Shown piece by piece: positions 21,127-59,075 of a stretch of 64,000 nucleotides of DNA. Source of the stretch: Basidiobolus meristosporus CBS 931.73. Its lineage: Eukaryota; Fungi; Basidiobolomycota. Under the pieces are notes generated by a model. It ran no database searches and was not told the DNA's origin. It saw nothing but the letters and a program-made list of their open reading frames with translations. The DNA lies in NCBI GenBank assembly GCA_002104905.1, contig MCFE01000265.1, positions 1-64,000 of the forward strand, read 5' to 3'. Each line of letters begins with the position of its first letter. Position 1 is the stretch's first letter. The position numbers and the translations under genes were made by a program.

Positions 21127-23958
21127 TCAGTGACCAGAATGTTGTTTTGGTGGTTCATGAGACACTGGTTGATATTGATGCTGGTATGAAACACGTGCCA
21201 TTTCGACCATAAGATCTTCCAGTCTACGACTCTTTTCCGATTTCATCGACTTGCCATGTGCTAGACGATCGAATGCTACCGAGTTTGATAGGATCATATA
21301 GACAAGGGCCATGACAATGAATACTCCGAACGAGTACAGCCAAATTCGCAACACGGCTACAATACTGGTATTGACTCCAGTAAACCATCCGAATAGGGCG
21401 AAGAGGGAAGCTAAGATATCGACAGCAAACACAGCACCTGCCAACTGCCACGAAGGCCAACTCTCAAAAAAGGATGTGTTCAGACGAGTAATGAAGATCA
21501 GCCAGTTCTCAGTCAATGCTACTTCGAGGAACAAAACCTCTTGAGCCCCACCGAAATTCTGAATGACTCCATTCCCAGGAACCATGGTGGTAGTGAAGAT
21601 GATCCATGTACCGATGGTTAGGATGATTCCCATCACTAAGGAGAGTCCCCACAGCTTGGGCAAGTTCCATTTCACTGGGGTGGCAGAGTATGGTGCATTA
21701 TCGTAGGCAACCATAAGAGTGGCCACATCAGCAAAGATAGCAAGAAATACAACAAGTTGTGCATTGATGGTCTGATCAAGAATGACCATAGAGGTGGTCA
21801 AGAACATCTCCAAGTGAAGGGATAGAGCAATACGATACACGATGTAGGCGTACATACGATGGAAAATCTGACGAGAAGTCTTGATAGCATCGATGATCAC
21901 TCCCAGTCCGGGGGCCAAGAACACAATATCGGCAGCACTACGAGCAGCATCACTAGCTCCTTCCACGGCAATTCCGGTGTCAGCCTTCTTGAGGGATGGT
22001 GCATCGTTCACACCATCACCGGTCATGGCAACAAGGTAGCCACGCTTCTGGAGAATGTCAACAGCATGATACTTGTGCTCGGGGAACACCTCAGCAAATC
22101 CATCAGCTGCCTCAACAAAGTCATACAATTCCGCTCCAGTCATGTCTCCTTTACTGGATGCCCCACCGCCGCCCATACCAAGCTGATCAGCATTGTAGAT
22201 ATTGGTGCCCATTCGGAGTTGTCTGGCCGTTTCCTTGGCAATACCAACAGCATCGCCGGTAAGCATCTTCACTTTGAGTCCGAGTTCTTGGGCGGTAGCA
22301 ATGGTCTTGGCGGTATCATACCGTGGGGGATCGAACAACGGCAGGATACCAAGGATTTGCCACCCATTAGCTGGGGTGTACCAAGCAATACCCAAACTTC
22401 TGAAGCCACGATCGGCAAACTCCGCAACCACTTCATCATACTTGTAGGCCACATCTGGATTGATGGAGCCTTCTCTCTCCACCATGCGAAGCACAAATGG
22501 TGGGGCTCCCTTGACTGCAACACACTCGTTGCCTTCAGGGTCAATCACTTTGGCAATCACCATCTTCGACACTGGATCGAACGGCTGGAACTCTTTCATG
22601 CGATACTCTCTCATCTTTCTCTTTGCATTCGGGTACTTTCCCAAGGCTTTGATCACGGCTTTGTCGATGGCATCCATACCCTTCTTCTTTCGCGAGGCGG
22701 CCAAGGCAGAGACAAACATCAGCATCTCATCGTCCACCCCTTCAACGCAGTATGGATCGTGAAGGGTGAGCTTGTTCTGAGTAAGGGTGCCAGTCTTGTC
22801 CGAACACAGGATCTCCACACCAGCAAGTGACTCAATGGCGGTCAGCTTCTGCACAATGGCCTTCTTCTTGGCCAAGAATGCCGCACCGACCGCCATTGTG
22901 GTTGTGACCACAGCAGGGAGACCAACTGGAACACCAATTACGGTGATGATGAGTGTATACTCCAGCAGCCTGACAATGCCAAGCGAGCGATAGAAGCCAG
23001 CAATCCAAATGATCAACAGCCACAAGATCACTAGAATTAACAGGACCGTACCAATGTTGTTGATGACTTCGGTGAAATGCCCAGTCCCACTGGACTTTCC
23101 TGCAAGTGTGGCTGCTCTCCCGACAAACGTTCTTTCGCCGGTGGCTGTGACAATTGCATAACAGCTGCCTCGCTTGATAGCCGAGCTACTGAACAACTCA
23201 TCGCCTGGGCCTTTGGACGCTGCCAGCGACTCACCGGTCAGAGCTGACTGGTCCACCTGTAGCCGGGAATCTTCACCGAGAATCCGAGCATCAGCCGGAA
23301 CAATTGCACCGTCCTCGACCAAGATGATGTCCCCTGGCACCAGCGAGTTGGCCTCCACTTCTCCTTGTCTGCCATCTCTTACAGCAGTAGCCGAAAGCGC
23401 CAGCGTTTGCTTTAGTTGATCGATGATGTTTCCAGCTTGGTACTCTTGCAAGAAGCCGACGACTGCGTTCAAAACCAGCAATGCAATGATCACACCAAAA
23501 TCGACCCAGTCTCGAAGCCCGCCAGCCAGGCACACTGCAGCCCACATCACATACTGGATCGGACCGCAGAAGAACTTCAGGAATTTGATGAAACTGTTCT
23601 CAGTCTCCATGGAGAGCTGATTGAGGCCATACTTCTTTCGCCGGATTTCCACTTCAGCAGAAGTCAAGCCTATGTTTGGATCAGTTTGGAGCAGTTCTTC
23701 TGGTATTGGCTTCTCTCTAATCTCCCCTTCTTCATCTTCTTCATCCTCCAGGTGATCTTCTTCGTCACTCCAATCATAATCGCTCATGATAGATATGGCA
23801 GCCGCCGACTGTTGGGTATCCTTCTTGGATAGTGGGGTAGGAACGAAGTTGGCGTCAGCACTCAACAGCCGATCTCTAGCCGGGGTCGGCTGTGTCGCGT
23901 CAAATTGCACGGACGAGGGATTCATATTTTGTGGGTCGGGGTCGGGTTTCTCGGACAT
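21127..23958 (-). CDS. PMA1: Plasma-membrane H+-ATPase (P3A), array copy 1, group A, 943 aa
   Basis: [73 protein letters not shown] all intact; intronless. Confidence 0.97.
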
Positions 23959-24394
23959 CGTATGTAAGCCCAGTCCTATAAAGTTGATGAAGGGAATTCA
24001 CCTTGTTGACCATTTTATATTGGTGACACTAAGCATCAGTTTCCAATAAATGCGATTTTAGGATTACTAACGACATTTAGCATATACCGAATCGGATCAC
24101 ATCTCACCACTGTACCTCACTATTGGATGATGGTAATTGGTTTCATCCACCATGATAGTGATCTCCCAGCTGTGGAGCATATCGAATATACCGAATTACA
24201 GCCGGTCGAGGTGCCTGTCATCTTACCTTTCTTCCCATTTCGACGATGTTTCACGGGGTCCAGGCTTATAATATCATTGATTCTATTTTCAGAACATATC
24301 AGGTGAAGCCAGAGACTCGAGAGCCTTTATTATACCAGAATAGTGTACAAAGCATTATGGGTGGTGAAGGAATTGTGACGATTAAAGTTTTTCA

Positions 24395-27208
24395 CTACTT
24401 GTGTTCATGAATCATAGATTTGCGATGGTGCTGATTTGAGACGCGTGTTAATTGGAGCATGAAATCCTCTACGTTGCGGTTGTCCTCCGCCCTGAATGAT
24501 TTGCCATGGGCAATTCGATCGAATGCCTCCGAGTTTGATAGGATCATATACACTAGTCCCATGACACAGAAGACCCCAAACGAGTAGATCCAAATGCGCA
24601 CCACTGTAACAATGCTGGTATTGACTCCAGTGAACCATCCGAATAGGGCGAAGAGGGAAGCTAGGATATCTACAATAAACACCGCTCCTGCCAATTGCCA
24701 CGAAGGCCAACTCTCAAAAAAGGATGTGTTCAGACGAGTAATGAAGATCAGCCAGTTCTCAGTCAATGCTACTTCGAGGAACAGAACCTCTTGAGCCCCA
24801 CCGAAATTCTGAATGACTCCATTCCCAGGAACCATGGTGGTAGTGAAGATGATCCATGTACCGATGGTTAGGATGATTCCCATCACTAAGGAGAGTCCCC
24901 ACAGCTTGGGCAAGTTCCATTTCACTGGGGTGGCAGAGTATGGTGCATTATCGTAGGCAACCATAAGAGTGGCAACATCAGCAAAGATGGCAAGAAATAC
25001 AACAAGTTGTGCATTGATGGTGTAGTCAAGAATAACCATAGAGGTGGTCAAGAACATCTCCAAGTGAAGGGAGAGCGCGATACGGTACACAATATAGGCG
25101 TACATACGATGAAAAATCTGACGAGAAGTCTTGATAGCATCGATGATCACTCCCAGTCCGGGGGCCAAGAATACAATATCGGCAGCACTACGAGCAGCAT
25201 CACTAGCTCCTTCCACAGCAATTCCGGTGTCAGCCTTCTTGAGGGATGGTGCATCGTTCACACCATCACCGGTCATGGCAACAAGGTAGCCACGCTTCTG
25301 GAGAATGTCGACAGCATGATACTTGTGCTCAGGGAACACCTCAGCAAATCCATCAGCCGCTTCAACAAAGTCATACAATTCCGCTCCAGTCATGTCTCCT
25401 TTACTTGATGCTCCACCCTGGGTCATACCAAGCTGATCAGCATTGTAGATATTGGTACCCATTCGGAGTTGTCGTGCGGTTTCCTTGGCAATACCAACAG
25501 CATCGCCGGTAAGCATCTTCACTTTGAGTCCGAGTTCTTGGGCGGTAGCAATGGTCTTGGCGGTATCATACCGTGGGGGATCGAACAACGGCAGGATACC
25601 AAGGATTTGCCACCCATTAGCTGGGGTGTACCAAGCAATACCCAAACTTCTGAAGCCACGATCGGCAAACTCCGCAACCACTTCATCATACTTGTAGGCC
25701 ACATCTGGATTGATGGAGCCTTCTCTCTCCACCATGCGAAGCACAAATGGTGGGGCTCCCTTGACTGCAACACACTCGTTGCCTTCAGGGTCAATCACTT
25801 TGGCAATCACCATCTTCGACACTGGATCGAACGGCTGGAACTCTTTCATGCGATACTCTCTCATCTTTCTCTTTGCATTCGGGTACTTTCCCAAGGCTTT
25901 GATCACGGCTTTGTCGATGGCATCCATACCCTTCTTCTTTCGCGAGGCGGCCAAGGCAGAGACAAACATCAGCATCTCATCGTCCACCCCTTCAACGCAG
26001 TATGGATCGTGAAGGGTGAGCTTGTTCTGAGTAAGGGTGCCAGTCTTGTCCGAACACAGGATCTCCACACCAGCAAGTGACTCAATGGCGGTCAGCTTCT
26101 GCACAATGGCCTTCTTCTTGGCCAAGAATGCCGCACCGACCGCCATTGTGGTTGTGACCACAGCAGGGAGACCAACTGGAACACCAATTACGGTGATGAT
26201 GAGTGTATACTCCAGCAGCCTGACAATGCCAAGCGAGCGATAGAAGCCAGCACTCCAAATGATCAACAGCCACAAGATCACTAGAATCAACAGGACCGTA
26301 CCAATGTTGTTGATGACTTCGGTGAAATGCCCAGTCCCACTGGACTTTCCTGCAAGTGTGGCTGCTCTTCCTACAAACGTTCTTTCGCCGGTGGCTGTGA
26401 CAATTGCATAACAGCTGCCTCGCTTGATAGCCGAGCTACTGAACAACTCATCGCCTGGGCCTTTGGACGCTGCCAGCGACTCACCGGTCAGAGCTGACTG
26501 ATCCACCTGTAGCCGGGAATCTTCACCGAGAATCCGAGCATCAGCCGGAACAATTGCACCATCCTCGACCAAGATGATGTCCCCTGGCACCAGCGAGTTG
26601 GCCTCCACTTCTCCTTGTCTGCCATCTCTTACAGCAGTAGCCGAAAGCGCCAGCGTTTGCTTTAGTTGATCGATGATGTTTCCAGCTTGGTACTCTTGCA
26701 AGAAGCCGACGACTGCGTTCAAAACCAGCAATGCAATGATCACACCAAAATCGACCCAGTCTCGAAGCCCGCCAGCCAGGCACACTGCAGCCCACATCAC
26801 ATACTGGATCGGGCCGCAGAAGAACTTCAGGAATTTGATGAAACTGTTCTCAGTCTCCATGGAGAGCTGATTGAGGCCATACTTCTTTCGCCGGATTTCC
26901 ACTTCAGCAGAAGTCAAGCCTATGTTTGGATCAGTTTGGAGCAGTTCTTCTGGTATTGGCTTCTCTCTAATCTCCCCTTCTTCATCTTCTTCATCCTCTG
27001 GGAAGTCCTCTTCGTCACTCCAATCATAATCGCTCATGATAGATACCGCCGCAGCTGACTGTTGGGTGTCTTTTTTGGTTAGTGGGGTTGGAGTAAACTC
27101 GCCATCCACCGAGAGATGTCTCTCTCTCGTTGGGGTGGTCTGTGTTGTGTCAAACTGCACGGTGGAGTTGTTTAGACTTGCCGGGTTGGGGCCTGGTTTT
27201 TCGGACAT
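24395..27208 (-). CDS. PMA1: Plasma-membrane H+-ATPase, copy 2, group A, 937 aa
   Basis: Same motifs; core nearly identical to copy 1, termini differ. Confidence 0.97.
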
Positions 27209-27897
27209 ATTAAATATCTATATGAGAAAACAGATTCGGTTGTTTGAGGTGTACGATGCAAAATATAAACTGGATGGGCAGCATGCGAATCATTTTTATA
27301 GGTGCCTTGGTACTGTGTTCTCCACTTGGATCACTTGCCGTCACAAATTATTCATAATCATCCCTACCAAAAATGGCAATGGTAAATTTACCCCAACTAC
27401 CTAGTGATTACCGAATAGGACTGTTCCTAACGCTGGTATTATTCGCTTTCCCGACCATCTCCCAGGTCACCACAGGTTACTGGAACCGTATTACGCAAGC
27501 GCCATATATTGCTTTCCCATTTTAACATAATCGATATACGTTTGAATTGAAATAAGTGTGGGCCGCATTCCCGATGGTAATATACTACAGATACCTGGTG
27601 AGGATGTTTCACCACCCGATCAATGCGTTGCTCAGATCAGTATATAAAGTTATTGTGTAACGAGATAGACAGCTGCCACGAAGCGTAACTGACCGGCATT
27701 TACTGATTCCGTGATGGGTTGCAATTAGCACTCATCAAGTATGGCATAGACTAATACTAATACTGAATAAAAAATAGAGGCTTTTATCTATGCAATTATA
27801 TTTATTTAATAATATCAAGCGAAACGGCAATATTAGGCATATGATGATTTCTAGGGTATCTATTGGGTATCAGTGTGCAAATATGAAATGTACTAAT

Positions 27898-30687
27898 CTA
27901 ATGTTGTCCCAACATGGGTTGCTCTTCATGTAGTCTGGATATACGTGCCATCTCAACCATTAAATCTTCCATGCCTCTGCTCTTCTTCTTCATCGACTTG
28001 CCATGAGCAAGTCTATCGAAAGGCCTCGGAGTTCGACAGGATCATGTACACCATGGCCATGACAACAAACACTCCGAACGAGAACAGCCAGATACGGACG
28101 ACCGCAACAATACTGGTATGCTCGCCAGTGAACCATCCCCAAATTGCAAAGCACGAGGCAAGGATATCAACTGCAAACACAGCACCAGCCAATTGCCAGG
28201 ATGGGAGACTCTCGAAGAATGATTTGTTCAGACGAGTGATGAAGATCAACCAATTCTCAGTCAAGGCAACTTCAAGGAACATCACTTCTTGCGCTCCACC
28301 GAAGTTCTCAATGATACCGTGGCCAGGGACAAAAGTGGTGGTGAATACGATCCAGGTACCGACAGTGAGAATGATCGACATGACCAACGAGAGTGCCCAC
28401 AGCTTGGGTAGGTTCCACTTGACTGGGGTAGCCGAGTAAGGAGCATTATCGTAGGCAACCATGAGAGTGGCTACATCGGCAAAGATGGCAAGGAACACAA
28501 CGAGTTCGACATTGATTGTTTCGTTGAGAATGACAATCGAGGTGGTCAAGAAGATCTCCAAGTGAAGGGACAGAGCAATACGGTACACGATGTAGGCGTA
28601 CATACGATGGAAAATCTGGCGAGAAGTCTTGATAGCATCGATGATCACTCCCAGTCCGGGGGCCAAGAACACAATATCGGCAGCACTACGAGCAGCATCA
28701 CTAGCTCCTTCCACAGCAATACCGGTATCGGCCTTCTTGAGGGATGGTGCATCGTTCACACCATCACCGGTCATGGCAACAAGGTAGCCACGCTTCTGGA
28801 GGAATGTCGACAGCATGATACTTGTGCTCAGGGAACACCTCGGCAAATCCATCAGCTGCCTCAACAAAGTCGTACAACTCTGCTCCAGTCATACCACCCT
28901 TACCAGATGCTCCTCCGCCACCCATACCGAGTTCATCGGCATTGTAGATATTGGTGCCCATTCTGAGTTGTCGTGCGGTTTCCTTGGCAATACCAACAGC
29001 ATCACCGGTAAGCATCTTGACCTTGAGTCCGAGTTCCTGAGCAGTAGCAATAGTCTTTCCGGTATCAAACCGGGGAGGATCGAACAGTGACAAGACACCA
29101 AGAATCTGCCATCCGTTAGCTGGAGTGTACCAAGCAATACCCAAACTTCTGAAACCACGATCGGCAAACTCAGCAACAACTTCGTTGTACTTCTTAGCAA
29201 GATGCAGGGTCCAGAGTACCTTCCCTTTGAACCATGCGAAGCACAAATGGTGGGGCACCCTTGACTGCGACACACTTGTTGCCCTCAGGATCGACAACCT
29301 TGGCAACCACCATCTTGGACACAGGATCGAATGGCTGGAACTCAGTCATGCGGTACTCTCTCATTCTTCTCTTAGCGTTAGGATACTTTCCGAGTGCCTT
29401 CACAACAGCCTTGTCAATGGCGTCCATGCCCTTCTTCTTACGCGAGGCAGCCAAAGCGGAGACAAACAGCAGCATCTCCTCATCCACTCCATCCACACAG
29501 TAAGGGTCGTGGAGGGTGAGCTTGTTCTGAGTCAGGGTGCCAGTCTTATCCGAGCACAAGATCTCCACACCAGCAAGTGATTCGATGGCAGTCAGCTTCT
29601 GAACAATAGCCTGCTTCTTAGCCAAGAAGGCCGCTCCAACAGCCATAGTGGTTGTGACCACTGCGGGAAGTCCGACTGGGACACCAACAACAGTGATGAC
29701 CAAAGCATACTCCAAGAGCTTGACAATTCCCAGCGAGCGATAGAATCCAGCACTCCAAATGATCAGAAGCCAGATGACCACAAGCACCAGCAGAACAGTT
29801 CCGATGTTGTTGATGACCTCAGTGAAATGGCCAACTCCATTGGACTTTCCAGCAAGGGTAGCGGCTCTTCCTACGAAGGTATGTTTGCCAGTGGCAGTGA
29901 CAACAGCATAACAGCTACCACGCTTGATGGCTGAGCTACTGAACAACTCATCACCAGGTCCCTTGGAGGCTGCCAATGACTCGCCAGTCAGCGCTGCTTG
30001 ATCGACCTGGAGACGTGAGTCCTCACCAAGAATACGAGCATCAGCTGGAACAATCGCACCATCCTCCACGAGAATGATGTCACCTGGAACGAGCGATGTA
30101 GCCTCCACCTGGCCTTCCTTTCCGTCTCTGACCGCGATGGCGGAGAGTGCCAATGTCTGCTTCAGCTGGTCAATGATGTTGCCAGCCTGGTATTCCTGGA
30201 TGAACCCGACGAATGCATTCAGTGCCAGCAACCCAATGATCACACCAAGATCGACCCAATCTCTGAGACCTCCGGAAAGGCCCACAGCAGCCCACATCAC
30301 ATACTGAATGGGGCCGCAGAAGAACATGAAGAACTTGAGGATCTTGCTCTCACTCTCGATGTCGAGCTGGTTGAGTCCATACTTCTTACGACGGGTGTCA
30401 ACCTCAGCCGAGGTCAATCCGACCCTTGGATCGGTCTGGAGTAGCTCCTCAGGCACGGCGGTTTCGACCAATTGGCCTTCCTCATCGACCTCTTCCATTA
30501 CTTCACCATCATCACTCCAGCCATAGTCACTCATGATCGAGATGGCAGCGGCGGATTGCTGGGTGAGCTTTTTGGAGAGTGGAGATGTGGGACTCAGGTT
30601 TCCGGATCCATTGTTCTCACTGGCAGGCTCCACGGTGTCAAACTGTACACCAGTGGGATTTGTATTTTCGTCAGGTAGTTCTGACAT
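27898..30687 (-). pseudogene. PMA1: Plasma-membrane H+-ATPase, copy 3, group B; three +1 frameshifts, probably consensus errors (928 aa if corrected)
   Basis: Extra bases at 29202-29205, 28801-28804 and 28018-28021 relative to paralogs; removing three bases restores a full ORF ending ...[26 protein letters not shown] at 27898. Confidence 0.9.
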
Positions 30688-30848
30688 CGTGTATTATGTA
30701 TGCGGCTGAATATGTAATTATTAATGTGGCTACTGTCGATTTGGGCTGGTTTTTATATCTTCTGACTCAAACTCGATCACGTATCGTCACTGTACTGTTA
30801 GCAAGGGCCTAACCAATTTTGTCCCGATGAAGCTAGACTGGGTTCTTT

Positions 30849-30864
30849 TGATTTCGGAAAATCA
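30849..30864. promoter_or_regulatory. Near-palindromic promoter motif TGATTTCGGAAAATCA upstream of copy 3
   Basis: 162-177 nt upstream of the ATG; homologous motifs upstream of copies 4 and 5. Confidence 0.5.
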
Positions 30865-31959
30865 TACCACAGTTTCCACTTGATATAGTTCCCTAAAGGG
30901 GATAGTATTTTCGCTGGTCCGCGGCTGGTTATTATAAACAGATCAATGTAAAGTCAATAAACTGTATATATCCAGGAAGTGTCCTTCTTTGTCTCAGGTT
31001 TGCCATTTTATGATGGTTGGGTGGCATCGCGCTAAACTCAACACTAACCATATTCCAAGGTCGATAGCGCATTTCAACTATTGCTAATTTGTATGCTGAG
31101 CCTCAAACATGGAATTCATGCATCGGTAACACAGTCGTCTGTGCAAATTTCTATAGTAGTACCTACCACGCCTCTATCCTTGGTTCCAAACTGGACTAAT
31201 GCAGGTAGGATTACGTGATGGATATCGGATATCTAGCATGACCAATCGATAGCACGTATCGGGAATGGCTAGCCACCTATCGTGTTTAGGAATTGACTGC
31301 TTGATTAGGATTAGGGGCTTGTGTACTACTGGGTTTGGTTACCAGAGGGGCTAATTTTGGTTTAGTCTACTTAAAACCGGATATTAAGCTTGGAATTTTC
31401 AGGTGCATTCGACTGATTCCGGCTCTTAATAATACCGAGGGTGGAATCATGTCTTCCCAACGTTCATCTAATGTATTTGGTAACCCGCTTGTGCAATGCC
31501 TCAACGTACCAAGGTCCACAATGAAAGATCACCTATGGAAGATGCGCGCGCATGAGCCACCGAGTAGGATTATAATCTGCTTATTTTTTCAAGGACAATT
31601 ATACGGTGGTGTCATATTCCAAATCGGGAAACCATATCGGTCTTGTTACGGTGGATTTCACATGTGGATACGAGAATCTAGTTATGGAACTTGATTTCAG
31701 GATTTCAAGCTGATTGTCGACTTAATAACAAATCTGATCCCTAAAGATAAAAAGGGTCTCCATTTTCGTGAGTTTAGCACAGAAATTCTCATTACTCTAT
31801 ATTTACATTTCTCGTAAAGATCAGCCTCGAATCTTTGCTACCATTCAAACAAAACAAAACACCAATTATGAGTATTATCTTTATTATTCAGTTTAGCGTC
31901 AAATGCGGTATCTAAAATATACATGTGTTGAATGAAAATGAGGTATATCGCTTTCAAGA

Positions 31960-34761: not shown

Positions 34762-34935
34762 CTTGTACTAGTGTATTAGGTGTAAGTAGTCTATGAGAAT
34801 CAATGTACAAATGCTTTACTGATGTACAGACCTTCTTCGCGCATTATATATACCTACACTTTCACCTGAGTTCCAATCGATCCATTTTATCGCTTGATCT
34901 AATGCGCATCGTGGCCATAACATCCCGGTTTTGCA

Positions 34936-34951
34936 CGATTCCGGAAAATCG
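34936..34951. promoter_or_regulatory. Near-palindromic promoter motif CGATTCCGGAAAATCG upstream of copy 4
   Basis: 175-190 nt upstream of the ATG. Confidence 0.5.
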
Positions 34952-35859
34952 ATTTACACTGATCAGTTGACAAGATTTCCTGGTTGAGACTAATTTCCAA
35001 ATCCGAGCACCGCTAGATTTGGTCACTAGAGTATTACATCATGCGCTGTATTTGTTCATGGTGTTCCTATATTTACCGAAGGTTCCCTATTGCGCGTAGA
35101 TATTTAGGACGATTTCGAAGTGTATATGTTGAATGTTTAAACAATTTTGGATAGCATTTTATAATCTTAATTTCTGTAAGCTAACTGGGCGCCCACTGAT
35201 GACTTGGACATCATGCTTCGTTCACTTCTTTTACAAACCGGCTACTATCGTATAAAAGAATGTATCCATTGCACACTAATAGGCGGCTTGGTAAAGACTG
35301 TGTTCTTGATGACCTGATGTTAAGATTCACAATTGCAATCATAACACCTACAGTGGTAGTGGCTTCTAGTAATCCTCGGATAATTGTTTAATCGCATGTT
35401 AAGTCCAATGGATAACGCTTATTGACGTTGGCCAGTTTCAATAATTTACCGGAAATCCCTAATTTGACCATGGCACCTGTGGCCAATCGATAGCCAAACT
35501 TGTCAATGTCAAACTCAGTATCACAGACCAGAGGTAAAATAAATCCTTACATTAGATAGGGTTATCAAATGTGGAATTATCGGATCAGACTGGAAATAAG
35601 CCACGGAGCGCGAAAGGGTTACCACACGCGTAAAATCCATTCATTGCTATGGTTGGCTGTTTCCAATATTCTCTACAAACCGTACAGAAGCTATTCACTG
35701 TTGCTCAAAATTACTGGCACCTAATTAAAGATCATCATGAACACACTAAAAATCTGAATATTATCAATTTGTAGTTTATATATTATGATAACGAGTGGTC
35801 CAATTTACAAGTTTTGCTAGGATGGATTCTATAATGAAAGTAATAGACGGGTGGTGATT

Positions 35860-38658: not shown

Positions 38659-38836
38659 TATCAACTAGTCAATTAGTAATATGTAGTCTATGGATATGAA
38701 TTTCTAAATAATTGAATGATGTTTGGTGTCTACCGATCCACCATTTTATACTCTCGTTATACTTACTGCCCTCTGATAAATCTATTGACTTTCTTAAAGC
38801 GTAATACTTAATGGCCAATACATCGTTGCAGCAGCG

Positions 38837-38852
38837 CGATTTCGGATAATCG
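38837..38852. promoter_or_regulatory. Near-palindromic promoter motif CGATTTCGGATAATCG upstream of copy 5
   Basis: 179-194 nt upstream of the ATG. Confidence 0.5.
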
Positions 38853-43657: not shown

Positions 43658-43793
43658 TCACTCCTTAGAATTCACCATCTGAGTACTGGCGTGTAGGTTG
43701 CATAGACGCGCCATCTCAGCCATCAAGTCCTCTATGCCTCTTTTCTTATTCATCGGCTTAGCAGCTCGCCTCAAGCCTATGTATATGTGACAT
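43658..43793 (-). pseudogene. Internally deleted H+-ATPase remnant (C-terminal tail only)
   Basis: Translates as AKPMNKKRGIEDLMAEMARLCNLHASTQMVNSKE*, matching the paralog tails KSMKKKxRxMEDLMxEMARLSxxH; ATGTCA at 43793 lies just upstream. Confidence 0.8.
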
Positions 43794-44548
43794 AGTATCG
43801 TCAATCCTTGCCCTTAAATTTAGTCGATTAAAGTCGAAATGGAAATGTGGAATAGCGTTTTTACCGATCCAAGAGGCTCGCTGCCATGATATTGATTTCA
43901 TCACTCACCCAATATGTGCAATTCGCACTATCAATTCCGAAAATCACCGTACTTGGAATATCTGGTACTACTTGTATTGCGCGCATTCGCTCCTCAAGTA
44001 TCGTTCAATTTTTATTTCCCTTTGCTTGCAAATACTGCGAACATGCTACGCGTGTTCAATGGTATCTTACTGAGTGGGATAATGGAATTAGAAAGTAGCG
44101 GACATTGAGACAATAGCAAAGAAGGGTTTTGAAGTATGGATTTTCAATTACTATGAAGACCTTTTACATCATTAACCTTACTGTGGAGTTTAGGCAAATT
44201 TATTAACAGTGATCGCTTACATTGTGACGCAAATGCCGTTTTGATAACAACCGTAATTTGTTTGTACAAATGACCAAAATAATAATCGGACGCGAATCCA
44301 AATTGTTCAAAATTGAATTCAGCTGGTCCGTTAATCCTGCCGAAATTCAAAGTACTTTCAACTCCAATAAGCCTTTAGGAATATCAGAGATACATATCGC
44401 TCCTGATAGCTGGTTTCTTGAGTGCGACTGGTTGCCATCGACACCTCGTAAGTAATATCTTTACTAGAACTAAAATAGAATGTGTATGTATATATCTAAA
44501 GCTCATTGGGGTCACTATGCTATTAATCAGGGTATGAAATTAATTCTT

Positions 44549-47326: not shown

Positions 47327-48691
47327 CCTTTTGGAGGCAGTGAATTCAAATTACCTAGATGATGAACTTGATTACTGGTGCGTGTGGTAAGCGCAAGGTT
47401 TTATAATTATTATATCATGCATGGTAACTCTCATACCCGCCGTTGGTCGTTCCATGGAAATTCCAAATCCAATTATCCTTGTTCATTCAAGCACTGACAC
47501 TTACAAATCCAGCCATTGATTGGAATGATGATCTAGGAATGGATATCGTCTGGACAATTTCTCTGCGTTTGCTATGATGCAACCTCAGAGGATATACTCA
47601 ACAGTAAACGTGAATTGTTCTACTTCAGGGCACACGCCTTTATTTCAGATATTTCGAGGCATTTCAGGCATCAGGGGAAAATCCCCATTACTCTCCAACA
47701 TACTATCATTTGGCAAGCATCTGCTTTCAGTATCGAGCGCTATGGGTGGATCATAATAAGCTAAACTTGTTTATGCATATCTATGCTGTCACAATCAACT
47801 AGAATCCCCCAATTTGTACATGGTTTACTATATAATCCCGATGGGAATAAAATAATAATGATCAAGCGATATTAGCACAAACCAAAGATTCATTCCATGT
47901 GCCTATATAGCTTCAAAATATCCAAGTGTTACTATGATATAATGTAGACTTTGAAAGTCAATGGAGCGTCTTAATGAACAGTAGTCATCATTAACAGATA
48001 GCGAGCATATCACCAGATAGGATAAGTATAATCCGTTGTTGTGGCTCAGTTGATTAAGTAAGCGGCTTTTACTAGTGATTAGTTATTGCTTGATAGCCAA
48101 TGTGGGTTGCGCACGGGAAATTCGAGATTCCATTCCGTTGCAAAAAAATCACCTACCTCATCGATAACATCTCCCTGAAATCAGCAATGAGAAGTCTTTA
48201 TATGGTAGCTCAACCTCCTCATCCATTGGTCTTGGTAAACTGTTCACCATATCGGATCATTATTTCACCAGCGATCCCATCGTGATGCCATAACCGTATA
48301 AGCAGTCCCATCACCAAAACTTATTGGATCAGCGAGTACACACCATGTGTATTCACGACAGTTCCTGCTGCCTTTTTCAGTACTCTACCATGGGCATAAA
48401 CGCTAAAAATGAAACTTGAACACGTGGCTTGATGGAGCGGATACCAGGGGCCAACGTTAACATACAAACAATATTTCAGATATGGGTGAGGTTTTGTCCG
48501 AGGATATAATACGATTGTTGATGATAGCGATATCTTTTATTAAAATGAATTAAGATGGGTTTGGCAATAGCCAACACCCACCATTTACACCGGACAACTT
48601 GGATGTCTATAATCTATTTGGGTATAATCTATGTAAGGTGTCCGGAATATTAGGACAAGTATGAATTTGAAATCTAAGGTGAACCAGTGAA

Positions 48692-51487
48692 TTAGTGGCT
48701 TTCTTCTGAGTCTTCTTCAGCCAACATAGGTTGCTGCTCATGCTTGACAGAAAGACGGGCCATCTCAACCATGAAGTCCTCCATGCTTCTGTTCTTCTTC
48801 TTCATCGACTTGCCGTGAGCAAGTCTATCGAAGGCCTCGGAGTTCGACAGGATCATGTACACCATGGCCATGACAACAAACACTCCGAACGAGAACAGCC
48901 AGATACGAAGAACCGCAACAATACTGGTATGCTCGCCAGTGAACCATCCCCAGAGTGCAAAGCACGAGGCAAGGACATCAACTGCAAACACAGCACCAGC
49001 CAATTGCCAGGATGGGAGACTCTCGAAGAAGGAAGTGTTCAGACGAGTGATGAAGATCAACCAATTCTCAGTCAACGCAACTTCAAGGAACATCACTTCT
49101 TGCGCTCCACCGAAGTTCTCAATGATACCGTGACCAGGGACAAAAGTGGTGGTGAAGGTGATCCAAGTACCAACGGTAAGGATAATGGCCATAACAAGTG
49201 AGAGTGCCCACAACTTGGGAAGGTTCCACTTGACTGGGACAGCGGAGTAAGGAGCATTATCGTAAGCAACCATAAGAGTAGCAACATCAGCGAAAATGGC
49301 AATGAACACAACCAGTTCAATGTTCATTGACTCGTTCAGAATGACAGTACTGGTAGTCAAGAAGATTTCCATATGGAGAGAAAGAGCAATACGGTACACG
49401 ATATAGGCGTACATACGGTGGAAAATCTGGCGAGAAGTCTTGATTGCATCGATGATCACTCCCAGTCCTGGGGCCAAGAACACAATATCAGCAGCACTAC
49501 GAGCAGCATCACTAGCTCCTTCTACAGCAATACCGGTATCAGCCTTCTTGAGGGATGGTGCATCGTTCACACCATCACCGGTCATGGCAACAAGGTAGCC
49601 ACGCTTCTGGAGAATGTCGACAGCATGATACTTGTGTTCAGGGAACACCTCAGCAAATCCATCAGCTGCCTCAACGAAGTCGTAGAGTGCTGCTCCAGAT
49701 AAACCACCTTTATGCGAACTACCGCCACCGCCCATACCAAGTTCATCAGCGTTGTAGATATTGGTGCCCATTCTGAGTTGTCGTGCGGTTTCCTTGGCAA
49801 TACCAACAGCATCACCGGTAAGCATCTTGACCTTGAGTCCGAGTTCCTGAGCAGTAGCAATAGTCTTTCCAGTATCAAACCGAGGAGGATCGAACAGCGA
49901 CAAGACACCAAGAATCTGCCATCCGTTAGCTGGGGTGTACCAAGCAATACCCAAACTTCTGAAACCACGATCGGCGAACTCAGAGACAACCTCGTTATAC
50001 TTCTTAGCAAGTGCAGGGTCCAGATTACCTTCCCTTTGAACCATACGAAGCACAAATGGTGGGGCACCCTTGACTGCGACACACTTGTTGCCCTCAGGAT
50101 CGACAACCTTGGCAACCACCATCTTGGACACAGGATCGAATGGCTGGAACTCAGTCATGCGGTACTCTCTCATTCTTCTCTTAGCGTTGGGGTACTTTCC
50201 GAGTGCCTTCACAACAGCCTTGTCAATGGCGTCCATGCCCTTCTTCTTACGCGAGGCAGCCAAAGCGGAGACAAACAGCAGCATCTCCTCATCCACTCCA
50301 TCCACACAGTAAGGATCGTGGAGGGTGAGCTTGTTCTGAGTCAGGGTGCCAGTCTTATCCGAGCACAGGATCTCCACACCAGCAAGTGATTCGATGGCAG
50401 TCAGCTTCTGAACAATAGCCTTCTTCTTAGCCAAGAAGGCAGCTCCAACAGCCATAGTGGTTGTGACCACAGCGGGAAGACCGACTGGAACACCAACGAC
50501 AGTGATGGCCAAGGCATACTCCAAAAGGGTGACAATGCTGAGAGAACGATAGAAACCAGCACTCCAGATAATCAATAACCACAGGATCACAAGCACTAGC
50601 AGAACAGTACCAATGTTGTTGATGACCTCAGTGAAATGTCCCACTCCGTTAGATTTTCCAGCAAGGGTAGCGGCTCTTCCTACGAAGGTATGTTTACCGG
50701 TGGCAGTAACTACAGCGTAACAGCTACCACGCTTGATACCAGAACTACTGAACAACTCGTCACCAGGTCCCTTGGAGGCTGCCAATGACTCACCAGTAAG
50801 AGCGGATTGATCGACCTGGAGGCGGGAGTCTTCACCAAGAACGCGACAATCAGCGGGGACAATTGCACCATCTTCAACGAGAATGATATCTCCGGGAACA
50901 AGCGAGGTAGCCTCAACTTGTCCCTCCTTTCCATCTCTCACTGCGATAGCCGATAGGGCCAATGTCTGCTTCAGTTGATCAATGATGTTACCAGCTTGGT
51001 ATTCCTGAAGGAAACCAACGAATGCGTTCAACGTAAGCAAACCAATAATGACACCAAGATCAACCCAATCTCTGAGACCTCCGGAAAGACCAACGGCGGC
51101 CCACATCACATACTGAATGGGGCCACAGAAGAACATGAAGAACTTGAGCAGTTTGCTCTCACTCTCGATATCGAGCTGGTTGAGGCCATACTTCTTACGA
51201 CGATTTTCGACTTCAGCGGATGACAATCCAGTGCTAGGATCAGTTTGGAGTAACTCCTCTGGAGTAGCCGTCTCCACCACCTCACCATCCTCATCAACCT
51301 CTTCCGCCGCTTCACCATCATCACTCCAACCGTAGTCACTAAGGATAGAAATGGCGGCTGCAGATTGTTGAGTATCTTTCTTCGATAGTGGGGAAGTTGC
51401 AGTCAAGTTCCTTCCACCCTCTGGGGCGGCCTGTTCAGAATCAAACTGAACTGTGGCGTTGTTCATGTTTGTGCCTTCGTCTGACAT
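48692..51487 (-). CDS. PMA1: Plasma-membrane H+-ATPase, copy 8, group C, 931 aa
   Basis: All motifs intact; group C markers [24 protein letters not shown]. Confidence 0.97.
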
Positions 51488-53042
51488 ACTTGAAAGCTTC
51501 TTAGTACTTTGGATACTAAGAGGTGTGTAAGTAGAGAATTGATGTTATACTCCTATCTCTGCTCCTTTATATACTGTTTGGATGTACGTCTCTTTACCCG
51601 TATCTTGATAATTCGGAAATGACACGATATGTTCCTCGCGAGTCTGTCCCAAAATGGGAATCGATTGGAAGATTATGGACTAGAGTCTCCATGCGGCGAA
51701 TGATATGGTGGTACCAGATATATCGGTAATAGGTTTTTCAGTGGCATCGATCTTTTGGGAAGATATTTCTGTTGATACCTACAAATCAGCTGCTTGATAG
51801 TGGTCTACTTTCGAAATGCGCGATTTAGAGACATCTCGGTAACCAATATTGTCTCATCATCAGTTGGAATAAATTTTATTAAACTTTTTACTTATGTCAC
51901 CAAAACTTTATAATATCAGATAATCGGTATGTTGGGTCTTCTTTTGGATGAGATTTGCTTATACTATGCAATAGGGTACTGGCCTATACAGGTCCCTAAA
52001 GCTAGGTGTTTACGGACTGATAGTGCTCATTAAGCGGGATTTACCTAAGATACAGCAAAACATGGCTGCGAAATGGGAATATTCAGTTTATGCTTTGTGT
52101 ACGCTAATCAGTAAGATTTGTTTTCCGATGATCGTTAATGGATAATAGGGTAAATGGATTATCGCACGCATTGATTTAAATTGTATCCTATCTTATTTAT
52201 CGGGATCATCTCGCAGTTGTTGAAATCTTGGTGGGAGTACACGCTCAAGAGCATGATATTGAGGCTTTGGGATTAGCGACATTGAAATACAGTACAGTGA
52301 ATCCCACGGGTTACCTACCGCTAGAATGTATTTTAAGTACCTATCTTGCCTCCTATAGGCGATACCCAATGCAACTGCCAAACACGATAGCGATGGAACC
52401 AATAGTGACAATGCTATGCACTTACTCACGCTGTCATCTTTATTCTAATATATCGTGTTATACATATTCATGTATTTCTTGTATCTGTTCAGGCTAAATA
52501 ATCAGGAGTCCATAATAGCCAATAGGTAGCCAGATCGCAAAAAACGTTGATCCACTTTTATATACCATATATAGTTAATCGCCTCTGCAAACACCTATTA
52601 TACCAGCATGCCATATTTGTCGCACAAAAATGAGCAACTTGTGCTACATATTCCGTATCCAACGATTCCTATTATGAAACCTAAGATCTATCAATACGGC
52701 CGCTTACTCATTGACAAATGGGATAATATTTACGCACCAAAAATCGTGATAAAGACTGCGTAATTTTGACGGGACATTAGATCGATGAATCACATACCCT
52801 AATAATTCCCCCAGTCCAAATATGGCAAATGGTCACCTGGATTTTTCACCAAATTTCTTCACCGTTGCTTCAAGCATAACTAACGTCAGATAGTAAGGGA
52901 TTCATTCCAGAATGATTGGAACATACAGTAAATTTTTATTAATGACTTGATTTATAATTCTATGGAGTAAAAATGCAGGTACGGCTGAAGTAAGGTAAAA
53001 TACTACGGCAACAATTCTAAATGTAAATTACAATGGTAAAGG

Positions 53043-55820
53043 TTAATGGCCCTCCTTGCCCTTCTTGCCCTCCTCTTCTTCGAGCATAGGTTGCTCTTCA
53101 TGACGAAGGGAAAGACGTGCCATCTCAACCATGAAGTCCTCCATGCTTCTGTTCTTCTTCTTCAACGACTTACCATGAGCAAGTCTATCGAAGGCCTCAG
53201 AGTTTGACAGAATCATATAAACAAGTGCCAACACCACGAATACTCCGAACGAGAACAACCAGATACGAAGAACCGCAACAATACTGGTATGCTCGCCAGT
53301 GAACCATCCCCAGAGTGCAAAGCACGAGGCAAGGACATCAACTGCAAACACAGCACCAGCCAATTGCCAGGATGGGATACTTTCAAAGAAGGAAGTGTTC
53401 AGACGAGTGATGAAAATCAACCAATTCTCAGTCAAGGCAACTTCAAGGAACATCACTTCTTGTGGTCCACCAAAGTTCTCAATGATACCGTGACCAGGGA
53501 CAAAAGTGGTGGTGTAGGTGACCCAAGTACCAACGGTAAGAATGATGGCCATAACAAGTGAGAGTGCCCACAACTTGGGAAGGTTCCACTTGACTGGTAC
53601 GGCGGAGTAAGGGGCATTATCGTAGGCAACCATAAGAGTAGCAACATCAGCGAAAATGGCAATGAACACAACCAGTTCAATGTTCATTGACTCGTTCAGA
53701 ATGACAGTACTGGTAGTCAAGAAGATTTCCATATGGAGAGAAAGAGCAATACGGTACACGATATAGGCGTACATACGGTGGAAAATCTGGCGAGAAGTCT
53801 TGATTGCATCGATGATCACTCCCAGTCCTGGGGCCAAGAACACAATATCAGCAGCACTACGAGCAGCATCACTAGCTCCTTCTACAGCAATACCGGTATC
53901 GGCCTTCTTAAGGGATGGTGCATCGTTCACACCATCACCGGTCATGGCAACAAGGTAGCCACGCTTCTGGAGGATGTCGACAGCATGATACTTGTGCTCA
54001 GGGAACACCTCAGCGAATCCATCAGCTGCCTCAACGAAGTCGTAGAGTGCTGCTCCGGATAAACCACCCTTACCAGATGCTCCACCACCGCCCATACCAA
54101 GTTCATCAGCGTTGTAGATATTGGTGCCCATTCTGAGTTGTCTTGCGGTTTCCTTGGCAATACCAACAGCATCACCGGTAAGCATCTTGACCTTGAGGCC
54201 GAGTTCCTGGGCGGTAGCGATAGTCTTTCCAGTATCAAACCGAGGAGGATCGAACAGTGACAGGACACCAAGAATCTGCCATCCGTTGGCTGGGGTGTAC
54301 CAAGCAATACCCAAACTTCTGAAACCACGGTCGGCGAACTCAGCAACAACCTCGTTGTACTTCTTAGCAAGTGCAGGGTCCAGATTGCCTTCCCTTTGAA
54401 CCATGCGAAGCACAAACGGTGGAGCACCCTTGACTGCGACACACTTGTTGCCCTCAGGATCGACAACCTTGGCAACTACCATCTTGGACACAGGATCGAA
54501 CGGCTGGAATTCCAACATGCGATACTCTCTCATTCTTCTCTTAGCGTTAGGATACTTTCCGAGTGCCTTCACAACAGCCTTGTCAATGGCGTCCATACCC
54601 TTCTTCTTACGCGAGGCAGCCAAAGCGGAGACAAACAGCAGCATCTCCTCATCCACTCCATCCACACAGTAAGGATCGTGGAGGGTGAGCTTGTTCTGAG
54701 TCAGGGTACCAGTCTTATCCGAGCACAGGATCTCCACACCAGCAAGTGATTCGATAGCAGTCAGCTTCTGAACAATAGCCTTCTTCTTAGCCAAGAAGGC
54801 AGCTCCAACAGCCATAGTGGTTGTGACCACAGCGGGAAGACCGACTGGAACACCAACGACAGTGATGGCCAAGGCATACTCCAAAAGGGTGACAATGCTG
54901 AGAGAGCGATAGAAACCAGCACCCCAGATGATCAACAGCCAAAAGATAACAAGAACCAGCAGAACAGTACCAATGTTGTTGATGACCTCAGTGAAATGAC
55001 CAACTCCGTTAGATTTTCCAGCAAGGGTAGCGGCTCTTCCTACGAAGGTTTGTTTACCAGTGGCAGTAACAACAGCGTAACAGCTACCACGCTTGATACC
55101 AGAACTACTGAACAACTCGTCACCAGGTCCCTTGGAGGCTGCCAATGACTCGCCAGTAAGAGCGGATTGATCGACCTGGAGGCGGGAGTCTTCACCAAGA
55201 ACGCGACAATCAGCGGGGACAATTGCACCATCTTCAACGAGAATGATATCTCCGGGAACAAGCGAGGTAGCCTCAACTTGTCCCTCCTTTCCATCTCTCA
55301 CTGCGATAGCCGATAGGGCCAATGTCTGCTTCAGTTGATCAATGATGTTACCAGCTTGGTATTCCTGAAGGAAACCAACGAATGCGTTCAACGTAAGCAA
55401 ACCAATAATGACACCAAGATCAACCCAATCTCTGAGACCTCCGGAAAGACCAACGGCGGCCCACATCACATACTGAATGGGGCCACAGAAGAACATGAAG
55501 AACTTGAGCAGTTTGCTCTCACTCTCGATATCGAGCTGATTGAGGCCATACTTCTTGCGACGATTTTCGACCTCAGCGGATGACAATCCTACTCTCGGAT
55601 CCGTCTGGAGAAGTTCTTCGGGAACCTGGGATTCCACAACTTGTCCATCCTCATCCACTTCTTCGGCCGCTTCACCTTCTTCACTCCATCCGTAGTCACT
55701 AAGGATAGAAATGGCAGCAGCGGATTGTTGTGTTTCCTTTTTGGTCAAACCAGAAGTAGGCGTCAGAAGAGTGGATTCATTATTTTCGCCCCCATTTCCA
55801 GCATTTGCATTTTCCGACAT
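53043..55820 (-). CDS. PMA1: Plasma-membrane H+-ATPase, copy 9, group C, 925 aa
   Basis: All motifs intact; start at 55820 (MSEN..) by homology, with TATATA near 55902. Confidence 0.95.
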
Positions 55821-56849
55821 CTCTATTAGTTTAGTTTCACTGCGACCTCCACTGTTCGGAATAAGCAATGATCTGAATTTCGAATGGAAGTGCCCCACGG
55901 TTATATACCCCCTTGAGACTGGAATTTTTGGCGCTAGTCTTCTCCCTTGACGCGACGCCATTGGTCCATGATCGGCTAAGTATTTTTACGTGATTGGTGA
56001 ATTCATATTGATGGTTATATCTTATGCCATCGCTATTCAATTCTTCCGCCTGGTGTGAGGTTAATGTTGGCATAAGCACCTTATTCTACACACTAGTCCA
56101 AGTTAGTATAGTGTACTACACGGGATGATGTAATCTTCGGCCATGCTCGATTCTTATTTGCGGCCCAGTCTAAGTGGTAGCAGTTACGCATTCGGTTAGA
56201 GCATCTCAATCCGGCATCTCCAGAATGATTTTCATCGGGATTGATACAGCAGAAGCAATCTTATCACTCGATAATGAATCAGCACTGTTAATACTTTAAC
56301 CATCACATTGTTGGACTACTCCCTTGGTTGACCTCAAACAATGATTGTTTATGAGTGACCCTTACACGAAAAATATCACCAAGGCTCATATGGACTGTTT
56401 ACCACGGACGCGAGATATGATCTATTCTCTCACGGTGCAAAATTCCTCGGTGGATGCTGAGGACCTCGCTATTACGTAGTCGGTAGAAATATTTTGCTTA
56501 GACATGGACCAAATCGTTTAGACGCCAATTTAAGCAGATGGTTAATATTGGTACCTTCGATGCTATCTTTAACTGCGAAATAATCCATTGTTGGCGGGAT
56601 GCCGTCATGAGCCTCAACTTATTTCCGCTAAACTATGTTTATGCAACAATCGGCGTTATCAGTTTAATCAACATGTGTAGGTAGCGAAGTTTACGAATCA
56701 GTATGGTGATGAGGATGCGGATTCGATGGGTGATTCAGTGCTCAATACTCACAAGTCCTTTCCAAAAGGAGAATAAAACATACAGATCTGCCCAATGAAC
56801 CTCGAGGGATGGGAATGATTACATTCCTTCTGGACGTCAAATAATTTTG

Positions 56850-59075
56850 GCGGTTGCTTGGTGTCCAGAGTCGAATCATGAGTCATGCCAACTCTCTAAA
56901 CTTCCATACCTCTTCCTCCTTTTTTCATGTAAAGAGTGGCTTGGATTTGACCAAGATCACCAATGGCCACGAGGGAATACTGCGAGATGGGATAAAACCC
57001 GCAGAATACTAGTGTCATGGCCGATCAATCATCCGAAAGTAACAAAGGCCAGCACAGGTACATCAGAAGCAAACATGGTCCGAGCCAACTGCTGAGATGC
57101 CCAGCTCTTGATAAGTGTTATGTTCAGACGAGATGACGACCGACCAACTTTCAGTCAAAGCGACCTCAACCACCAAATTTCTTGGCGGCATTCATGCTAG
57201 TGATACATACAGTCCAAATACCGACGATATGACTGAACCTCACGACAGGTGAAAATGACCACAGAAATGGTGGCTGAGTATGTGGTATGATCCGCGCGAA
57301 GTATAATATGTTGGCATATATACGATAGGGAAGCTGGCGAAAAGTCTCAATAACATCGATCCTCACACTCACTCCTGGAGCCAAGAATCCGAGATCAGCA
57401 GTGCTGCGAACCACGTGCAACCAAACTAGCTGGGATGATCCACGCAATCGGTTTTCTAATGTGAACGAAGGAATGCAATGCAGATTGAATTCAATCGTGT
57501 TCTCTGTGCTGGCGATTCTGTTGACACCGAGAATTTCCATCCTGGGTAATGAGGTCTCTATTGCCCACCAAATCATGAAATACTTTTAACCAATCTTTCC
57601 GCCCCTATCGTCTGATCGCTGACGGGTGGCAAAACCTACACCAGGATTCGACATCGGTGTCTTGTTTGGCGGCTAATCCATGGTTCTCGAAGTTACATTC
57701 GGATTTCATGTCGTGACAACCACGCGAAACCTCCTTTACCTTAGGAAAATGGTCACGGTGCAGCTCTACCCAAGTATAACTCAAACCATGGTGGAAGGAA
57801 ACCTGAATTCAAATCATATCGGATTGTTTCAAGAACCATTTCCACCTTAAATTCATATTAACCATTTGAAGTGGGTTCTGCGCATTTACGATCGTCTTGC
57901 CTATTTGCTCAATCTCCACAGAGTGGATGCCAAGGATGTTGGGTTAAGGTTAATTGTGGCAAGTTGCTCAAGGTTTGTTGGTTACAATTTGGTTTAGGGT
58001 TAGGGTTGTATGGCTAATTATCGAACGAGTGGAATTCGCCAGTTTTCTTAAGCATAGACACCACATTACTAGCATTACATATATAGTATGTATGCTCCAC
58101 ACCGCACAAACGAACTTATATAGCCAGCAGCCGCATTTCGGAATACGCGGAGACTTCGTGCTTTTGGCTATATCCCGATTTCCTAATTCATCTTGAACAT
58201 CAGGAAAGCACTACTTCGAGTTTCGCATAGATGCGGAGAGAAATCCATGCTCTGTACCCGAATGCTAAAGCCCGTTAACTTGGAACGTCTAACATCACTG
58301 CAACCGATACAATCATTTTCGGCCCCGTCGGTAGAGGATCCGGAGACTTAACATCATCTTCCAAACGCCCCAAACTGTTATGCAACGATCCATACCGGTA
58401 TAGTTGAGTATTTTAGGCAGAACAGTGCCGTCTCTGATTTACTGCGAAATACCCTTGATTCTGGACTGAAGGGTGATTTAAATAGCCGATCGCCAGTTAC
58501 TTGGGAATCTAGGCTAGTTCCGCAATACATTCCATCAACTGAATCTATTCCAGGTCCTGATAGAGCATCACCGTATATTCTGTATCATAGTATGCTGGCT
58601 GATATCAGACATACTATATTCAGACGAACCGTTCCGAAAAGATCATGAAGCCTGATTTCAATGGCACATTGATGGCTTGTCGTGGTCGTAGGGGCGAGGG
58701 TGATGCTAGTGATTACTAATGCGCGAAGGTCTGTAGCCGTCCATGCTGTGATGTCACTGATAAAGCTGCATGTGGTAAGGATTCAGTAGATCCCCAGTTG
58801 GGAAATAGGGATGGGATCGCGCAGAGCCAAGGTGTGGTGTCAATTCCGCTAGGCGCACTACAATAATATGAGCATTTCCTTCCGTAAAAGGCATTCAGTG
58901 TTGATCTCTTTGTTACTACAAGTAAGCATGGATTGTATAGAACCAAAAATATTGGGGAGCCGGTTATATATTCATACTGGCTGTGAGCTACGTATACCGA
59001 TCCGAATTTCGCCACCAAAGTATATGGTCAGTGTGCATTTGCTACTGGGCTTTGGCCTATCCTTATTACTATATC
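56850..59075 (-). pseudogene. Heavily eroded, near-full-length H+-ATPase relic
   Basis: Colinear remnants: KKYGLNQ-like (~59050-59075), TLNAFxG (~58890), TLTLNQI for TLTQNKL (~57975-57995), W-K-x-LGV (~57525-57545), RSTADLGFLAPG for [12 protein letters not shown] (~57375-57410), ttcagacgag for ITRLN (~57123), MKKGGRGME tail (~56895-56925). Many stops, frameshifts and deletions. Confidence 0.75.

Follow-up and report, generated by a model that had tools for sequence, protein, structure and literature searches.

The first 64,000 bases of contig MCFE01000265.1 (107,914 bp) in the assembly GCA_002104905.1 of the fungus Basidiobolus meristosporus CBS 931.73, hereinafter the window, contain nine full-length genes for plasma-membrane proton pumps of the Pma1 type (P3A H+-ATPases, here PMA genes), which follow each other head to tail on the minus strand and are accompanied by two relics. 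Our main new finding is that these genes show concerted evolution of their coding core around terminal segments that are old and private to each copy. We consider it fairly probable, judging from the sequences, that they represent an old, genus-level tandem family of working Pma1-type pumps, which would act as separately regulated isoforms. In what follows the names c1-c8 refer to the open reading frames (ORFs) of the array, 'ps' to its ninth full-length copy, and far, d1 and d2 to copies lying outside it.

The copies fall into the groups c1/c2, ps/c3/c4/c5/c6, c7/c8, far and d1/d2. Neighbouring copies share a core of ~800 codons that is 96-100% identical at the nucleotide (nt) level, whereas their first 50-100 and last ~50 codons are 50-85% identical. 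Within the groups c1/c2, ps/c3-c6, c7/c8 and d1/d2, the synonymous divergence (dS) of the cores is 0.02-0.16, as against 0.5 to >2 in the termini (first ~60 and last ~50 codons) of the same pairs, a contrast of ~10- to 30-fold. For instance, c3 and c4 differ with a dS of 0.95 at the N-terminus and 0.88 at the C-terminus, but of 0.03 in the core, and the corresponding values for c1 and c2 are 1.19, 1.68 and 0.08. This identity is patchy along the genes: for c6 and c7, individual windows of 50 codons range from 81 to 100%. A homogenised core with divergent ends also characterises the inverted pair d1/d2, whose cores are 99-100% nt identical and whose first 50 codons are 48% identical. The eight spacers of the array, which measure 436, 689, 1272, 1098, 964, 2133, 1365 and 1555 bp in array order, are without detectable mutual similarity, except for one 48-nt match at 81%. 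The contrast in dS between cores and termini, together with these unalignable spacers, indicates that the duplications are old and that the cores are being homogenised. A comparison with B. ranarum AG-B5 (GCA_040143965.1), whose array genes are available as partial sequences, revealed that core identity among paralogues within a species is 83-99%, as against 70-80% for counterparts of the same N-terminal type between the species. Over core codons 110-320, a B. ranarum copy of the c1 type is 83% identical to other B. ranarum copies and 72.5% identical to c1; the value for c1 against c2 is 98.9%. Most simply, the homogeneity of the core would result from recurrent gene conversion, a process that we infer from these patterns of identity.

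The private termini and the promoters, in turn, look functional rather than like junk. The ratio of nonsynonymous to synonymous substitution rates (dN/dS) in the private N- and C-termini is 0.1-0.36, pointing to purifying selection. The private C-terminal ~50 codons constitute the end of the autoinhibitory R domain, whose sequence, of the fungal type, is found in all copies. The position matching S911 of the yeast protein is invariant throughout, and that matching yeast T912 is occupied across the array by Y, N, R, L, N, N, Y, V and L, and never by Thr; the position matching yeast S899 is Ser only in c7, c8 and far. Upstream, all nine genes have a single TATA[AT]A[AT] motif 61-92 nt before the ATG, against a background in the spacers of ~0.0013 per nt, i.e. 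~0.05 expected per 40-nt window. The c1|c2 spacer (23959-24394, minus strand) harbours the putative c1 promoter, with TATAAAA at -61. The remaining upstream regions on the same strand (27209-27897, 30688-31959, 34762-35859, 38659-39622, 42416-44548, 47327-48691, 51488-53042 and 55821-56900) have one such motif each, at -70 to -92. From these motifs we infer that every gene is transcribed separately, from a promoter of its own.

The tandem array is real, old and shared within the genus Basidiobolus. Contigs of X1 and X2, which are Illumina-like DNA runs of this strain (~110 Mb of contigs), bridge the junctions c1|c2 (23766-24662) and ps|c3 (30550-32061) with no differences from the assembly, and a further contig bridges c2|ps (27016-28010). 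Within the cores, the X1 and X2 contigs are short and their word depth is several-fold higher, as expected for sequence common to several copies. An observation of a different kind concerns the 610 nt at 25643-26252, which are identical in c1 and c2, and yet have an Illumina word depth of 147, against 119-181 for unique spacers, which is that of single-copy sequence, perhaps as a result of bubble-popping in the Logan contigs. Contig word depth does not equal copy number, and it was rejected as a measure thereof, also in view of this single-copy depth of the c1/c2 core. In B. ranarum, on each of two small contigs (L008 and L009), a 2.2-kb spacer separates the 3' end of one PMA gene from the 5' part of another on the same strand, and each contig stops within the conserved core. 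The same genome also has two further PMA sequences, L010, which is an N-terminal fragment, and L007, a full-length gene orthologous to the far copy. N-termini of the c1/c2, c3-c8 and far types all recur in B. ranarum, and its junction contigs encode a common R-domain stem followed by a private tail. These head-to-tail junctions show that the tandem arrangement is old and shared between species of the genus. As a side observation, gene counts from assemblies like that of B. ranarum will badly underestimate the PMA family.

The proteins encoded by these genes match the Pfam domains E1-E2_ATPase, Hydrolase and Cation_ATPase_N (PF00122, PF00702 and PF00690, respectively). They align collinearly over their full length, including the C-terminal R domain, with the Pma1 of Neurospora (1MHS/7NXF) and yeast (7VH5) at E=0. 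They score 1230-1272 bits against these solved Pma1 chains, but 525 bits against the plant AHA2 and at most 231 bits against other P-type pumps. The motifs DKTGT, TGES, KGAP, DPPR, MLTGD and TGDGVNDAP are found at homologous positions in 12 of 12 sequences (c1-c8, ps, far, d1 and d2). The same 12 sequences retain the proton-path motifs, namely PVGLPAV in M4, the Arg of YRIALSLH in M5, the Asp of AIFAD in M6 and the Glu of LTENW in M8, which align to the same segments of 1MHS and 7VH5. Pairwise dN/dS among the copies is 0.04-0.33; their proteins diverge by 3-19%, and the termini and the spacer are unique to each copy. Thus, these genes are complete P3A Pma1-type H+-ATPases, with the pump function being predicted.

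A preliminary description of the locus had reported nine full-length head-to-tail pump genes on one strand, two dead slots, eight spacers differing in sequence and length, retention of all catalytic and proton-path motifs, and an origin other than assembly duplication. The array itself is borne out by the ORF list and a tblastn search of the window with copy 1, which yielded eight uninterrupted intronless ORFs of 925-943 codons and, with ps, nine full-length genes, all on the minus strand; two relics on this strand complete it. The spacer lengths are identical to those given then, every tested motif is present in all copies, and the unique termini and spacers, the three bridged junctions and the like junctions in B. 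ranarum speak against assembly duplication. What the earlier account had overlooked is the concerted evolution of the core, the three +1 insertions that the ninth gene carries as assembled, and the three family members outside the array.

In order along the window, c1 (21127-23958, 943 amino acids (aa)) and c2 (24395-27208, 937 aa), both intact, form one subfamily. The former is documented by its ORF, its Pfam matches and its E=0 collinearity with Neurospora and yeast Pma1, and the latter has a core 98-100% nt identical to that of c1 and private termini that are present on Illumina junction contigs. The full-length ps (27898-30687), which is 96.6% nt identical to c3/c4, precedes the subfamily c3-c8, all members of which are intact. 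These are c3 (31960-34761, 933 aa), c4 (35860-38658, 932 aa from its ATG, the listed ORF opening two codons earlier at TTG), c5 (39623-42415, 930 aa), c6 (44549-47326, 925 aa), c7 (48692-51487, 931 aa, identical to the public model P0002) and c8 (53043-55820, 925 aa). The open frame of c8 extends as far as 55961; homology, however, starts only at the internal Met at 55820, which is also the start used in the public model P0007. The TATA box of c8, at -87, lies within this 47-codon upstream extension, and the real start is therefore at 55820. Profile searches of the flanks and spacers detected exactly two relics, which correspond to the dead slots. Relic A (43658-43765), in the c5|c6 spacer, comprises the last 35 codons and the stop of a lost copy (…KPMNKKRGIEDLMAEMARLCNLHASTQMVNSKE before the stop), as recognised by nhmmer (E 7.5e-8) and by its translation. 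Relic B (56958-57413), at the upstream end of the array, upstream of c8, matches nt 2006-2638 of the coding sequence (M5-M10) with stops and deletions (hmmsearch and nhmmer, E 7e-24 and 1e-17). In the same searches no PMA-like sequence was found in the window flanks at 1-21126 and 57414-64000.

Just beyond the upstream end of the array is a Ty1/copia-type reverse transcriptase fragment (61938-62732, minus strand; Pfam RVT_2, E 2e-16), and a Pfam search of the small ORFs in the flanks and next to relic B gave no match other than this one. Downstream of the array, two minus-strand ORFs of 723 aa (14673-16844) and 400 aa (9634-10836) are without a Pfam match, the former being part of an 847-aa public gene model with no recorded domain. 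The public models of several array members, c2, ps and c8 among them (853, 863, 865, 866 and 896 aa), miss conserved coding segments relative to the uninterrupted ORFs, and the 863-aa model of ps jumps over the frameshift sites, dropping conserved coding sequence. Given these truncated models, the published proteome under-represents these pumps.

Three members of the family lie outside the array. The intact far copy (P0003, 955 aa) is encoded on the plus strand of the same contig at 98,061-100,928 (L002:10001-12868), 42 kb past the array and in head-to-head orientation to it, beyond the region with the retrotransposon fragment. A protein identical to far is also encoded on the 14-kb contig MCFE01001184.1 (L003), probably a haplotig, since it matches L002 along 9.2 kb with 98.6% identity. 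On MCFE01000709.1 (L004), d2 (4169-7012, minus strand) and d1 (10001-12856, plus strand) form a divergent head-to-head pair; d1 corresponds to ORX81303, to which Steger et al. (PMC9708826) refer. The number of intact PMA genes in the genome is therefore at least 11, to which ps, if intact, would add a twelfth. Among published fungal PMA counts, the highest that we found is six, for Puccinia striiformis (PMC11759449), whose genes are dispersed; next comes Hortaea werneckii with four, which followed a genome duplication (PMC3744574). Full-text literature searches recovered no paper describing the Basidiobolus array, or a fungal PMA array or family of this size, and the earlier assertion that no fungal PMA array this large is known stands as far as these published maxima go.

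Since no sequencing run is listed as RNA for this strain, the evidence on expression rests on a run termed X3. Its contigs amount to 26.7 Mb and leave every spacer examined uncovered; their word depth on coding sequence is 1,000-14,000, and an Illumina adapter is joined to a fixed 5' end. In its contig total, in the gap over the spacers and in the adapter at a fixed 5' end, X3 behaves like a transcriptome. Its 1594-nt contig starting at 23962 begins 4 nt before the ATG of c1, in the c1|c2 spacer and ~50 nt past TATAAAA, and has the letters of c1 wherever c1 and c2 differ; this transcript-like 5' end implies either a near-leaderless mRNA or a start at Met-12. X3 further holds a 30-mer unique to far, and abundant contigs of the c3/c4 type with no exact match to any single copy. 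Its contigs, which show presence and not absence, leave the private ends of both c2 and ps uncovered, as well as the 3' end of c3. The occurrence in X3 of c1, far and c3/c4-type sequence suggests that at least three members of the family are transcribed, with some array members being undetected.

How might such an array work? Under the interpretation that we favour, recurrent gene conversion would keep the ~800-codon cores nearly identical, while the copies would differ mainly in the timing of their production and in autoinhibition and phosphoregulation as set by their tails. The array would thus provide a single pump in multiple isoforms under separate regulation, like the plant AHA family, and the identical cores would allow Pma1 hexamers to be built from more than one isoform. 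The preliminary description had pictured a regulatory 'bank' of pumps, for dosage or for switching across pH or niches. The anatomy fits the regulatory part of this proposal, in that each gene has its own TATA box and spacer, the private tails are constrained, the phosphosites vary and the family is partially represented in X3. A link to pH or niche is speculation, and plain dosage stays a rival. A more specific version, which we offer tentatively, is that this is an isoform family that arose independently of that of plants, in which conversion keeps the catalytic and oligomerising core interchangeable for mixed hexamers, and selection keeps a private promoter and autoinhibitory tail for each copy. 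Such an arrangement of 'one engine, many throttles' could be tuned to a life that moves between soil, dung and a vertebrate gut ranging from acidic to alkaline, or else to the discharge of spores by turgor.

Several points weigh against regarding the copies as separately regulated isoforms. The expression evidence for it comes from X3, which is labelled 'DNA?', consists of contigs (presence, not absence) and represents one condition. The N-terminal tails of Pma1 are poorly conserved across fungi, and private tails need not mean private regulation. The read check covers three of the eight junctions, and among the same-strain contigs no Illumina contig with the core variants of c2 itself was found. 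Moreover, the mismatches between the assembly and the Illumina contigs, detailed below, mean that fine-scale identities carry some error.

The main rival to an isoform bank is simple dosage, according to which the copies are redundant, being retained because much Pma1 is needed, and the private tails and spacers are merely the parts that conversion misses. The almost identical cores are in keeping with this, as are the very high depth of PMA contigs in the RNA-like run and the wide variation of Pma1 N-termini among fungi. Nevertheless, the purifying selection on the private termini (dN/dS 0.1-0.36), the conservation of the N-terminal types in B. ranarum and the differences between copies at regulatory phosphosite positions would not be anticipated, and in the RNA-like run the private ends of c2 and ps are unseen whereas c1 is seen. 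On balance we regard dosage as a rather unlikely explanation for the array.

An array in decay, with few active copies and the rest silent or becoming pseudogenes, appears improbable to us. It could account for the two relics, for the frameshifts of ps as assembled, and for the missing RNA-like coverage on the private ends of c2 and ps and the 3' end of c3. Against it, eight ORFs of ~930 codons are intact with all motifs and a dN/dS of at most 0.33, and all nine TATA boxes are kept, including that of ps at -70. The case of ps itself deserves closer consideration. Each of its three lesions (near 29204, 28804 and 28019-28021) is a +1 insertion; apart from these the gene is without defect and keeps its own stop codon. 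Its nine private codon changes (6 synonymous and 3 not) are as few as those of its intact sisters c3 and c4. The assembly that contains it is PacBio-based or hybrid (PMC7466969; preprint 10.1101/2025.03.31.646025), and an Illumina contig over the 3' flank of ps lacks the assembly's base at 27821, in unique sequence 77 nt away. At 29204 and 28018/9 the contigs of the DNA and RNA-like runs are exclusively without the extra base, as are those at 28803, in the RNA-like run only; however, Logan contigs show presence, not absence, and those without the extra bases may derive from c3, c4 or c6, which are identical around the ps sites. A further caveat is the ~1.4% allelic-type divergence seen elsewhere in the strain (L003 versus L002). 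Taking these together, it is likely that the three frameshifts are consensus errors and that the gene is intact. A separate observation on assembly quality is that, in unique or copy-specific sequence, the assembly and the Illumina contigs disagree among positions 27114, 27567, 27821, 30124 and 30376, in four base differences and one extra base (27821); these may be either consensus errors or the other allele.

A different question is the origin of the family. All 113 best named hits outside Basidiobolus are from Ascomycota, at 61-67% identity, and the yeast R domain has been reported outside Ascomycota only from Basidiobolus (Steger et al., PMC9708826). Both observations, along with the lack of introns in the ORFs, could be read as favouring the acquisition of an ascomycete PMA1 by horizontal transfer and its subsequent amplification. 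However, in a maximum-likelihood tree, which was built without Mucoromycota, other Zoopagomycota and PMA1-type Basidiomycota sequences, the 11 Basidiobolus proteins are monophyletic (100/100) and form the sister group of ascomycete PMA1 rather than nesting inside it (100/99), with chytrid and blastoclad pumps branching next. The clade is thus placed outside crown Ascomycota, matching the species tree for the sampled taxa, and this sister relationship requires no horizontal transfer. Ascomycete PMA1 also heads the hit list of an unrelated outgroup query, which indicates that these proteins are slow-evolving and heavily sampled. About 36% of the native genes in this genome are without introns (PMC7466969). 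Furthermore, the R-domain core (R..EDF….ERVS..HE) is present in the chytridiomycete and blastocladiomycete pumps P0295, P0296, P0297, P0313 and P0330, a distribution that qualifies the published restriction of this domain to Ascomycota and one Basidiobolus protein (PMC9708826). Vertical descent and expansion within the Basidiobolus lineage would be sufficient to explain these sequences. Transfer from Ascomycota, which we judge very unlikely, was dropped as unnecessary in view of the sister placement in the tree and the R-domain core of chytrids and blastoclads.

An assembly artefact, in which haplotigs or mis-joined repeats were piled up in tandem, has a negligible chance of being the explanation, for although near-duplicate contigs such as L003 exist and the assembly differs locally from the Illumina contigs, the copies stand well apart in protein with unique termini and spacers, three junctions are bridged by Illumina contigs, and an independent species, B. 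ranarum, has the same head-to-tail junctions.

Tandem P-type ATPase arrays have a fungal precedent in ENA1-ENA5 of yeast, which are sodium pumps of the P2D type, few in number, nearly identical and variable between strains. The ENA genes arose by recent duplication (PMC3744574). The Basidiobolus pumps belong instead to the same family as S. cerevisiae PMA1/PMA2 and N. crassa PMA1, with which they are collinear at 61-67% identity, sharing all motifs and an ascomycete-like C-terminal R domain with the S911 equivalent. In contrast to the two dispersed genes of S. cerevisiae, of which PMA2 is expressed far below PMA1 (as cited in PMC3744574), Basidiobolus has at least 11 intact genes and an array of nine full-length copies, in which the equivalents of S899 and T912 vary. 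The trypanosomatids (Leishmania LDH1A/LDH1B and Trypanosoma cruzi TcHA1/TcHA2; PMC6884021) likewise possess head-to-tail P3A pumps, theirs with stage-specific expression. However, these number 2-4 copies, belong to another P3A lineage and are transcribed polycistronically without individual promoters, unlike the nine Basidiobolus genes with a TATA box each. The tandem triplication of HMA4, a PIB-type ATPase of Arabidopsis halleri linked to adaptation (PMC3749932), offers a parallel in its ectopic gene conversion, but involves three young copies of a metal pump with a dosage benefit, whereas the Basidiobolus copies are old and have private termini. The plant AHA families, with 7-22 P3A genes per genome (PMC10763278), are similar in isoform number, and their isoforms differ in expression and in R-domain regulation, although they represent another P3A lineage with an unrelated R domain (PMC9708826). 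In the literature found, a pump family of this plant-like size is described for no other fungus.

Pma1 is the essential pump that energises the fungal plasma membrane, and is a target for antifungal drugs. As the fungal models have one working Pma1 gene, its regulation is known from a single isoform. The array is hence a natural experiment on which parts of Pma1 may vary for regulation, its copies being ready-made tail-swap variants. In addition, it illustrates cleanly, in a eukaryote, concerted evolution that has persisted for long and yet is restricted to a coding core. Basidiobolus inhabits the guts of amphibians and reptiles and causes gastrointestinal basidiobolomycosis, and the redundancy of its pumps could bear on its pH tolerance and on Pma1-directed therapy.

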